Shown piece by piece: positions 42,187 to 45,447 of a stretch of DNA of 64,000 nt (position 1 is the stretch's first letter; each line of letters starts with the position of its first letter). The notes under the pieces are model-generated. The model searched no databases and was not told the origin of the DNA. It saw nothing but the letters and a program-made list of their open reading frames with translations. The stretch comes from Guillardia theta CCMP2712 (taxonomy: Eukaryota; Protista; Cryptophyta), in contig NW_005434576.1 in the NCBI RefSeq assembly GCF_000315625.1, positions 138,033 to 202,032 on the forward strand, written 5' to 3'. A program made the position numbers and the translations under genes.

Positions 42187-45100
42187 ATGAGAGCATGGCA
42201 AAGTCGAGCTGACTGGATGACGGTCAACTCAAGAAGGCAGGATAGGATGTGGAGGATGTGTCCTCGGAGAGTAGTTGTCGTTGCCGTGCTCCTGTTGATG
42301 TGCAGGAGCTGCTTGGCAGCGGATCTCATGAGGCAGAAGAGCATTCCTCCAGGTGATCTTGAGATGCTATATAGAGTTCGATCCTTCTGATCCCTTTCCC
42401 TCTTGCACCTTCTCTACGGACTCCCTTCCCTCCCTTGTGTACGTTTTGGCTACGTAAACGCTCCACTTCAGGATTAGACGCAGTCTGGATGGAACTGGTC
42501 CCGCTGGTTTCCTCAGCCATGTCGAGGTTAGCGACTCGGAAGGCTGCGACATGCTCTGAATCATCTCCACCAGCAAAGACACCGAGCTCGAAGTCAGGTT
42601 CGGCCTAGGAGAGTAAGTCTTTCAACTCAACGAGGAGGAGGAGGAGGAGGAGGAGGAGGAGGAGGAGGAGGAGGAGGAGGAGGAGGAGGAGGAGGAGGAG
42701 GAGGAGGAGGAGGAGGAGGAGGAGGAGGAGNNNNNNNNNNNNNNNNNNNNNNNNNNNNNNNNNNNNNNNNNNNNNNNNNNNNNNNNNNNNNNNNNNNNNN
42801 NNNNNNNNNNNNNNNNNNNNNNNNNNNNNNTGAAGCTGGAACAACTACATATTCTACACCCACGCGCCGCCGCGCAGCCGCCATAGTCTTCCTCGTCATC
42901 ATCGTCGACATGTACAGCATCATCTTTATTATTATGCAGGTGGGAGGGGAGAGAGAGAAAAACACAAACAACAACAACAAACAACAACATGAAGGCGGCC
43001 TGACGGAGGAGGAGGAGGAGGAGGAGGAGGAGGAGGAGGAGGAGGTCTCCTCATTTCATCCCACCGACTCCCATCCTATGTTCCTATCTCCGAATTCTCC
43101 TCGCACGCTTCCTCCTTGCATGCCCTCTGCTCCTCAGTCTTCCCTCTCCTGACTCGCTTTCTCTTTCTCCCTCCTCAGCATCAGCACGCGAGAATTTCCC
43201 AACGGAGTCAGCGAGCAGGCCTTCTACAACCTCCAGCAGATCCTCCACAGGAGCCATCAAAAGGTTCGTGAGGAGGAGGAGGAGGAGGAGGAGGAGGAGG
43301 AGGAGGAGAAGGAGGAGGAGAAGGAGGAGGAGCTGATTCAGCTGTCAGGGGAATGTACAGCTGCAAGGAGAAGGGTGGCAGAGGTGGGGGAGGAGGGAGG
43401 ACGGTGAAGAGAGGACGGCAGGATTGACTGTGACGTGCAGGATAAGAGACCTTCACTTCTGCAACAACATCCGGTCGACGTACCACGAGAACGGGGAAAG
43501 AGAGACAGGTAGGACGAGCTGGGAAGTTGCTGGGGTGTAGCTGAGCTGAGGATGGTTGGCAGTGTTCAAGCGGCTGCTCCAGAGGTCGGACATGGTGGGT
43601 CACAACCTGAACAACGTGCCGGGCTCCTCGAAAGTTTGCCACCTTCGTTTCTCGTGGAAAGCGGAACAACCTGTAATGGATGGAGTGACAGGTAAATGTG
43701 ATTGAGGGAGACTGTGAGGGGTTTGTTGGTCATCGTTATTGCTATCTCCATCACTGTTTCCATCATTATCATCGTCATCGCCGTCGTCGTCATCATTAAC
43801 ATCAACATCAACAATAACATTAACAACAACAATAACTTCAACATCATCATCATCATCATCAACAACAACAACAACTCATTACCATCATCATTATCATTTT
43901 CAATAAAAACATCATCATCATCATCATCATCATCATCATCATCATCATCATCATCATCATCATCATCATCATCATCATCATCATCATTTCTCCCGGAGGG
44001 TCGAATAGCGGTGCACCATCTCCACCATACCATCGCCATCTCCTCTTCTGCTCGTGTTCTCATTTGTTACCTGCAGACACTGGGCCTCTGGAAGGCGTCA
44101 GGGAGAAGAGGAGGATTTCATATGTTTACAAGATGTGAGACGTTCTCTTCCTCCCTCCAGCGACTACCCACATAACAACTTCTGCTCTCCTCTCGTCCTC
44201 CAGGTGGAGATACGACCTGACAGTCGTCTATGGCGCTCCTGTACAAGGTTGTCTCCTCCTCTGCCTCCTCTGTCTCCACGTATCTCTCCCTCTCTCCCTC
44301 CCTGTCCGTCCACTTTCCTTTCCTTTCCTTTCCTTTCCTTTCTTTTGCTTTCCTTTTCCCTAGTTCTTTTCCCGCTTTCTCTTCCCTCTTCCTCCTTCCC
44401 TCCTCCCTTCCCTCCTGGTCGTTCCCATTCCCATCCTTCTCCTCCCTTCACCCCTCTCCCTCCCTTCCCCACCTTCCCTTCTTCGCCTTCATCTCCCAAT
44501 CAGCCCTCACTCTCATACGCATCCCTTTCCTCCTCCTCCTCTCATCTTCCCCTAGATTTCAGCATGATCGATGCCGCGCTACAAACAGCGATCCCGTCCT
44601 TTGAGGTATTCATTTCTGTCCTCTCTCCCTCCCTCCTCCTCCCTTCCTCCTTCTCCTATCCTCGTGCTTCCTGTTCCCAGCTCCTCCACTATTCCTCTTG
44701 TCATGCTCATCCCACGATTTAAGATATTGTCCTCCTTATCACCCTCCTCTTGATACCCCCGCCCCCCGCCCCTCCTGCTCCCCTTTCTCTCTCCTTCCTC
44801 TCTCCTCCTCTCCCTCCTCCTCTCCCTCCTCCTCTTTTCCCTCCTCCACGCAGGTGGAGATGGAGTACCTTCCCAAGCGCGCTGGTTCTCCTGCTTCGGT
44901 CCCACCTGCTTATCTCGCGCATTCCATGCTCCTCAAGGCTCAGGTGCGAGCATCAGCAGCTGAAAGGACCCTCTCACTCCAGCTGGCAGGATGTTTGCGG
45001 GTTCTTGCTCGGGCACCAGGTGGTAGTGGCAGGAGGCGGAGCAGGAGAACGAGGGAAAGGAGAGGGAGGAGGAGGAGGAGAACGAGGAGGGGGGAAGGGG

Positions 45101-45447
45101 AAGGGGGGCAGGAGGAGAAAGGAGAAAAGAGGAAGAGGAGCAGGAGCAGCAGGAAGAGAACGAGACTGAAGAAAAGCAAGATGGAGGAGCAGGAGCAGGA
45201 GCAGGAGCAGGAGCAGGAGCAGGAGCAGGAGCAGGAGCAGGAGCAGGAGCAGGAGCAGGAGCAGGAGCAGGAGCAGGAGCAGGAGCAGGAGCAAGAGCAG
45301 GAGGAGGAGGAGGAGGACGAGCTGAAGTGTCTCATGCAGGTTCGCCCGGAGTTGATCATGCGAGCAGTCTACCTGCAGCAGCCTCCTGGCCGTGTGATGG
45401 AGGAGAACGTGGGGGAGCGAGGAGGGATGCAGGAGATTGAGGCGTGA
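42187..45447 (+). CDS. Signal-peptide-bearing triphosphate tunnel metalloenzyme (CYTH; Cet1/viral-type mRNA 5'-triphosphatase), about 13 exons
   Basis: Phase-consistent GT-AG splicing gives ...RRVVVVAVLLLMCRSCLA-ADLMRQKSIPPG|LDAVWMELVPLVSSAMS|SKDTELEVRFGLG|DISTREFPNGVSEQAFYNLQQIL...CHLRFSWKAEQPV...VREKRRISYVYK|MWRYDLTVV...SFE|VEMEYL. These are the ExExR/K, RxKxRxSY, xDLTxV and EVExE motifs of TTM RNA triphosphatases. Confidence 0.8.
42731..42830. other. Assembly gap (100 N), intronic
   Basis: Run of N. Confidence 1.

Follow-up and report, generated by a model that had tools for sequence, protein, structure and literature searches.

A divergent, probable Cet1-type triphosphatase with an N-terminal signal peptide in Guillardia theta, a candidate for the first step of nucleomorph mRNA capping

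The mRNAs of the nucleomorph have been described as capped (PMC3388326), and the red alga Cyanidioschyzon possesses a triphosphatase of the metal-dependent type (PMC5172449). In proteins of the periplastid compartment, the stretch after the signal peptide begins with a residue that is neither aromatic nor leucine, an aromatic residue at this position marking proteins of the stroma (PMC3101018). Work in diatoms indicates that the mature domain is able to supply the transit-peptide function and that the periplastid membrane can be crossed without positive charge (PMC3017844). The literature that we searched held no description of the route by which the nucleomorph capping pathway is completed, and no paper linking Guillardia to an RNA triphosphatase of its own. 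Here, we analyze a gene located within a 64,000-nucleotide stretch (the window) of the nuclear genome of Guillardia theta CCMP2712 (GenBank GCA_000315625.1, scaffold JH993062.1). Both the type of enzyme and the route of import belong to known kinds; new are the corrected full-length gene, a divergent subfamily of Cet1-type enzymes that bear a signal peptide, and a concrete candidate for the first step of nucleomorph capping. We infer, at a probability of about one half, that the protein is a periplastid/nucleomorph capping enzyme.

The gene occupies positions 42133/42187-45447 of the forward strand and consists of 13 exons, with GT-AG at every junction and consistent phases (Table 1). The 336-residue translation of this exon chain is 100% identical to an open reading frame (ORF) from an MMETSP transcript of Guillardia theta (P0007), which clusters at 90% identity with the GenBank entry EKX37228.1. 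The original prediction, made from the DNA letters alone, had proposed about 13 small in-phase exons encoding the motifs ELEVRFG, REKRRISY, WRYDLTVV, and FEVEME. The exact chain of 13 exons, which agrees with the transcript ORF over all 336 amino acids, confirms this splice model and places the motifs in exons 3, 8, and 9 and at the exon 10/11 junction, respectively. The gene is therefore real, transcribed, and spliced as modeled, with the signal-peptide exon within the mRNA, as read from an assembled transcript ORF rather than from raw reads.

The public annotation of this gene is a 151-amino acid "hypothetical protein" (EKX37228.1/XP_005824208.1, GUITHDRAFT_116643; P0001), which we located at 100% identity using a 42-amino acid exon as the query. 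This model begins at a methionine inside exon 2 and runs into intron 8 at its end, omitting both the signal-peptide exon and the C-terminal strands that bear the WRYD and ExExE motifs, and it has no Pfam match. Because the deposited protein lacks the signal peptide, the catalytic C-terminal half, and a Pfam match, published screens could not have detected the gene.

The introns are crowded with microsatellites, including (GAG)33, (CAT)26, (AGGAGC)22, and CT-rich arrays identified with Tandem Repeats Finder. An assembly gap at 42731-42830 directly follows the (GAG)33 array. Because the transcript joins position 42612 directly to 43179 (GLG/D-ISTREF), this gap costs no coding sequence and affects the true length of intron 3 alone. 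A 53-nt candidate exon at 42887-42939 was excluded by both the GenBank model and the transcript ORF, neither of which contains it. The window has other assembly gaps at 22810-23705, which is larger, and at 36869-36968 (100 bases).

To place the protein among known enzymes, we compared it with sequence families and solved structures. The Pfam family PF02940 (mRNA_triPase) was the top match in five of the six family members tested, in each case below threshold: the G. theta protein scored 17 bits against a cut-off of 24, and its orthologs scored 15-19 bits or nothing. NCBIfam yielded no match. Single-sequence searches of the PDB with the GenBank model and with the full-length protein returned chance lysozyme matches only, and single exons used as queries had no Pfam match and, in the PDB, only chance matches to the Na/K-ATPase beta subunit. 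A query with the stop-free frame at 44698-45444, in the exon 11 region, found nothing in a word-indexed protein search. When the alignment of the family (A1) was used as a profile against the PDB, the best match was Trypanosoma cruzi Cet1 (E 0.0016).

An AlphaFold2 model built on the same alignment has a mean predicted local distance difference test score of 78.6, with most of the core above 90. Eight strands are predicted, comprising residues 96-105, 137-151, 155-160, 165-181, 191-204, 215-228, 231-242, and 258-266. The top Foldseek matches of this model in the PDB are all capping triphosphatases, led by Pct1 (E 1e-8) and followed by T. cruzi Cet1, yeast Cet1, vaccinia D1, and the mimivirus enzyme. 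Pairwise VIA-align comparisons with the model gave Z scores of 19.0 for T. cruzi Cet1 (2.3 Å over 179 residues, 25% identity), 18.1 for both yeast Cet1 and Schizosaccharomyces pombe Pct1, and 16.6 for the mimivirus triphosphatase, compared with 8-12 for generic triphosphate tunnel metalloenzyme (TTM)/CYTH proteins (ygiF, AtTTM3, archaeal TTMs, and ThTPase).

The residues expected to line the tunnel follow the same pattern. Invariant within the family are Glu96 and Glu98 in the first strand, Arg147, Asp148, Arg156, Lys170, Arg196, Lys200, and Glu202; Arg219, Lys221, and Arg223 of REKRRISY, Asp234 of WRYD, and Glu261, Glu263, and Glu265 are invariant or nearly so. The FEVEME glutamates align with the IEVEM sequence of T. 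cruzi Cet1, and the K-x-R motif and the aspartate align with its LKDR and RYD sequences. Glu96 and Glu98 of ELEVRFG and Glu261, Glu263, and Glu265 of FEVEME are also kept in the viral relatives described below. The predicted structure thus shows a Cet1-like eight-stranded tunnel with all of its acidic and basic residues intact. Compared with a 77%-identical ortholog, the ratio of nonsynonymous to synonymous substitution rates (dN/dS) is about 0.09 in the core, showing that the enzyme is under strong purifying selection; the leader evolves fast.

As the subfamily is divergent and misses the Pfam cut-off, its Cet1-type membership rests on the fold and on these residues, which together indicate a divergent Cet1-type TTM enzyme that is very probably active. 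The identity put forward in the original prediction is thus upheld by the structural matches to T. cruzi Cet1 and to Cet1/Pct1 and by the conserved catalytic residues. Of the computational checks that had been proposed for it, the structure comparison gave a clear match, and the mRNA_triPase hidden Markov model stayed below its threshold.

Exon 1 encodes the hydrophobic stretch RRVVVVAVLLLMCRSCLA. Its core, VVVVAVLLLMC (42271-42303, residues 47-57), reaches a Kyte-Doolittle 11-mer maximum of 3.5. On its N-terminal side is MWRMCPRR, which contributes basic residues, and on its C-terminal side is RSCLA/A, with the likely cleavage following position 42318 as judged by hand. An N-terminal hydrophobic signal is present in all full-length members of the family, which come from the species represented by P0007, P0008, P0010, P0011, P0012, and P0017. 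In three of these (P0011, P0012, and P0017), the initiator methionine is set by an upstream in-frame stop, and the signal peptide starts right there. With cleavage sites picked by the -3/-1 rule rather than by a trained predictor, the residue after the likely cleavage is Ala in G. theta, Met in P0008, Ser in P0011, and Pro in P0012, and it is never aromatic. Both a hydrophobic signal peptide and a residue other than Phe at +1 had been predicted from the DNA; the first is encoded in the transcript and kept in all full-length orthologs, and the second holds in G. theta and its orthologs for the hand-chosen sites.

The position of the start codon is less clearly defined. Exon 1 contains in-frame ATGs at 42133, 42187, 42217, 42247, and 42256, and the nearest upstream in-frame stop is at 42091. 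Because the ORF is open from there to the ATG at 42133, the start codon is ambiguous among 42133, 42187, and 42247/42256 beside the hydrophobic core, and the protein length varies accordingly from 298 to 336 amino acids. The start at 42187 originally proposed is a genuine in-frame ATG, but it is not fixed as the sole start given the open frame upstream. In the closest ortholog, too, the transcript is open upstream. An out-of-frame upstream ORF at 42114..42212 (+) starts at an ATG in strong context, with A at -3 and G at +4. It runs across the first two in-frame ATGs and stops just short of the ATGs adjacent to the signal peptide. It would be relevant only with a transcription start farther upstream; if transcribed, it could steer the choice of start codon.

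To understand how widely the protein occurs, we performed a word-indexed search of 5.8 billion proteins, which identified ten relatives at 40-77% identity. The family comprises G. theta and roughly five to seven other organisms, represented by transcripts from cultures or the environment and by contigs from metagenomes. In one ortholog (P0017, transcript L008:70-330), the signal peptide is followed by about 50 residues that end in MRLRGG where the conserved mature domain starts. The L008 contig keeps one intron, and the other orthologs have their cleavage site where this leader ends. Two ortholog lineages (P0009, P0010, P0015, and frame 2 of L008) possess long RG/RGG-rich C-terminal tails with 7-12 RG dipeptides, a feature typical of RNA-binding proteins; such tails are absent from G. 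theta and its closest relative. N-glycosylation sequons are absent from six of seven members, and none of the seven has an ER (endoplasmic reticulum)-retention motif. An environmental genomic contig from one relative (L005:150-620) shows a single visible intron, which separates the N-terminal helix exon from the rest, versus twelve in G. theta. The L005 exon has no ATG before its hydrophobic stretch, making a further upstream exon likely.

Beyond the family, the profile search matched few proteins, all of which lie on giant-virus-like contigs. The best of these (P0018) was found with a profile E value of 8e-12 and an hhalign probability of 97.9% over 197 columns. It is encoded on a 14.9-kb intron-less contig (L002:1-12156; ERZ23499210 scaffold_1951). 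A separate guanylyltransferase gene (mRNA_cap_enzyme) lies about 1.5 kb away, and genes for Rpb2, Evr1_Alr, and a DUF5906 protein are also next to it, together a giant-virus gene set. A second match (P0019, E 0.15) comes from a dense contig that also carries genes for ATG8 and PaO, and a metagenome scan recovered a third similar ORF (L012). The resemblance to stand-alone enzymes of the chlorovirus type noted in the original prediction agrees with these collinear viral relatives, including P0018 with its separate guanylyltransferase gene. By language-model features and shape, the nearest ESM Atlas clusters are Nucleocytoviricota mRNA_triPase proteins, in an atlas that is rich in viral clusters. 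Searches of IMG/VR with the family alignment, with P0018, or with a joint alignment found no relatives, and VIA-align places the model slightly nearer to the solved structure of the trypanosome enzyme than to that of mimivirus. The C-terminal helix Y-x-A-x-S-x-LLKA was considered as a virus-specific link and rejected, since yeast Cet1 has a comparable helix. A viral link fits these observations but is a tentative lead, given the identity of only 25-29%, the lack of matches in IMG/VR, and the wealth of viral clusters in the Atlas.

We favor the periplastid compartment and nucleomorph as the site of action because every full-length ortholog has a signal peptide, one ortholog has an RLRGG-ending leader, and two lineages have RG-rich tails. 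The similar leader of the neighboring RRM gene, the scarcity of N-glycosylation sequons, the lack of an ER-retention motif, and the non-aromatic residue after the likely cleavage site point the same way, and the reported capping of nucleomorph mRNAs and the metal-dependent enzyme of Cyanidioschyzon agree with such a role. The precursor would first enter the ER around the complex plastid and then cross the periplastid membrane, with the short mature N terminus serving as the transit-peptide-like part. In the periplastid compartment and nucleomorph, the enzyme would then remove the γ-phosphate from nascent nucleomorph mRNAs, the first capping step, ahead of a guanylyltransferase.

Several observations weigh against this assignment. 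The signal peptide and the conserved domain are only about 10 residues apart in G. theta (ADLMRQKSIP), and five of six orthologs have about 8-15 residues between the likely cleavage site and the start of the conserved PxPGLxxVW segment. With so few residues after cleavage, no transit-peptide-like part is evident, and the sequence is just as compatible with a purely secretory or ER-lumenal fate. The transcript ORF also extends to two in-frame ATGs that precede the core-adjacent methionine by 38 and 20 codons, and a start at either would leave the signal buried, up to 46 residues from the N terminus. The sub-threshold PF02940 match (E 0.005) covers residues 196-265 only. In addition, the restriction of the family to cryptophytes is presumed, as is the gene content of the cryptophyte nucleomorph, which would include a guanylyltransferase ("mce") but, as far as is known, no triphosphatase.

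The short post-signal stretch leads directly to an alternative in which the protein is a secretory-pathway TTM phosphohydrolase that acts in the lumen of the ER or endomembranes, in the vacuole, or in the medium, with tripolyphosphate, polyphosphate, or nucleoside triphosphates (NTPs) as its substrate instead of mRNA 5' ends. Cet1-type enzymes also hydrolyze NTPs and tripolyphosphate in vitro. The proximity of the conserved domain to the cleavage site, with no clear transit-peptide-like stretch between them, suits a secreted protein, and periplastid and secretory proteins are hard to separate in silico (PMC3101018). Against such a role, the fold is far nearer to the capping triphosphatases (Z 16-19) than to the generic TTM/CYTH phosphatases, and the RG/RGG tails in two lineages, the scarcity of sequons, and the lack of a retention signal point to a nucleic-acid-binding protein in a cytoplasm-like compartment. 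The long RLRGG-ending leader of the P0017 ortholog is also at odds with simple secretion. We therefore consider a secretory function unlikely, though by no means negligible.

The ambiguity of the start codon bears on a different possibility, that the protein is the capping triphosphatase of the host nucleus, by sole or dual targeting, with an upstream ATG (42133/42187) or a downstream ATG yielding a signal-less form and the signal-bearing form being minor or absent. Alternative-start dual targeting has reportedly been documented for cryptophyte aminoacyl-tRNA synthetases. Several in-frame ATGs do precede the hydrophobic core, the closest ortholog's transcript is open upstream too, and a second capping triphosphatase of the TTM type did not come to light in G. 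theta in this analysis. Yet the three orthologs whose N termini are fixed by upstream stops (P0011, P0012, and P0017) start directly with a signal peptide, the downstream methionine of exon 2 is not conserved, and the family was found in a handful of close relatives only, unlike a pan-eukaryotic housekeeping enzyme, all of which makes a host-nuclear role improbable. Least probable by far is that a giant-virus gene was recently inserted here as an endogenous viral element and serves no function in the host. Such an origin would account for the only relatives outside the family being on giant-virus-like contigs and for the nearest Atlas clusters being from Nucleocytoviricota. A recent viral insertion is excluded, however, by the twelve spliceosomal introns, which are spliced in the mRNA, by the orthologs at 44-77% identity in several other organisms, and by the core dN/dS of 0.09; moreover, the viral proteins are only 25-29% identical.

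An older viral contribution can be imagined. The cryptophyte ancestor may have captured a stand-alone capping triphosphatase of the giant-virus type and added an ER signal peptide. The enzyme would now replace the endosymbiont's own Cet1 in capping the transcripts of the relict red-algal nucleus, with its mature N terminus acting as the periplastid import signal. This scenario is speculative, and as a whole we consider it rather unlikely. If it were true, a viral enzyme would be servicing an enslaved eukaryotic nucleus, imported with little or no transit peptide.

The gene directly upstream is oriented head-to-head with the triphosphatase gene and encodes a 651-amino acid RRM protein (PF00076). 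The ATG-to-ATG distance is about 340-450 bp, forming a common promoter region. The N terminus of this neighbor has a signal peptide and then a leader of ~35 residues that ends in SLRLRGG, resembling a ubiquitin tail. On the downstream side, positions 45547-49138 (-) hold a large gene of >1210 amino acids with a weak LysM match.

Table 1. Features of the triphosphatase gene and its divergent neighbor, in window coordinates
Feature	Position	Strand	Description
Exon 1 (E1)	42133..42352	+	Charged N-terminal stretch, hydrophobic core, cleavage site; in P0007
Exon 2 (E2)	42472..42526	+	Conserved mature domain begins, PGLxxVW helix; AlphaFold2 helix 76-91
Exon 3 (E3)	42574..42612	+	Strand beta-1, ELEVRFG, putative metal-binding E96 and E98; donor GTAAGT
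Intron 3	42613..43178	+	(GAG)33, then assembly gap 42731-42830; P0007 joins 42612 to 43179
Exon 4 (E4)	43179..43263	+	FPNGV...; F111, P112, G114, V115 invariant
Exon 5 (E5)	43349..43383	+	35 nt; shared with GenBank model P0001
Exon 6 (E6)	43441..43508	+	RDLHF, NIRSTY; invariant R147, D148, R156
Exon 7 (E7)	43563..43691	+	FKRLLQR ... LRFSWKAE; invariant K170, R196, K200, E202
Exon 8 (E8)	44077..44134	+	REKRRISY; R219, K221, R223; GenBank model ends by reading into intron 8
Exon 9 (E9)	44204..44247	+	WRYDLTVV; D234
Exon 10 (E10)	44556..44605	+	Matches P0007; FEVEME spans E10/E11 junction
Exon 11 (E11)	44854..44943	+	VEMEY (E261, E263, E265 jointly with exon 10); C-terminal helix YLAHSMLLKAQ
Exon 12 (E12)	44990..45019	+	30 nt, DVCGFLLGHQ
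Exon 13 (E13)	45340..45447	+	Last exon, including stop codon
RRM protein gene (PF00076)	38327..41793	-	Divergent neighbor, 651 amino acids; called gene

With the sequence corrected, the first step of nucleomorph capping has a concrete candidate that can be put to the test. The protein also offers a means of studying periplastid import with a minimal presequence, as well as a possible link between the capping enzymes of algae and giant viruses. A lumenal or secreted location would instead make it the first TTM enzyme of the capping type to act outside a nucleus or viral factory.

Comparison with the capping triphosphatases Cet1, Pct1, and trypanosome Cet1 reveals a shared predicted eight-stranded tunnel, with a helix before strand 1 and a C-terminal helix after the last strand. 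Also in common are the ExE motif of strand 1, the ExExE motif of the final strand, the basic Lys/Arg residues, and the Asp of the WRYD strand. The G. theta protein differs from these enzymes in its low identity to them (14-25%), its sub-threshold PF02940 score, its N-terminal ER signal peptide, and the confinement of its family, as found, to G. theta and a few close relatives. We know of no capping triphosphatase described so far with an ER signal peptide. The guanylyltransferase-binding peptide of Cet1, of the WAQKW type, is not evident by eye in the G. theta protein.

The stand-alone triphosphatases of giant viruses are similar in size, at 243-290 amino acids versus about 240 for the mature part of the G. 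theta protein, and are collinear with it from the N-terminal helix to the C-terminal helix. In contrast, the viral proteins have neither a signal peptide nor introns, and their identity to the G. theta protein is 25-29%. Relative to nucleus-encoded periplastid and nucleomorph proteins, the post-signal stretch of ~10 residues in G. theta contains acidic residues and is not typical of a transit-peptide-like part, whereas the signal peptide and the non-aromatic +1 residue are what such proteins have, and an RLRGG-ending leader is found both in the P0017 ortholog and in the neighboring gene.

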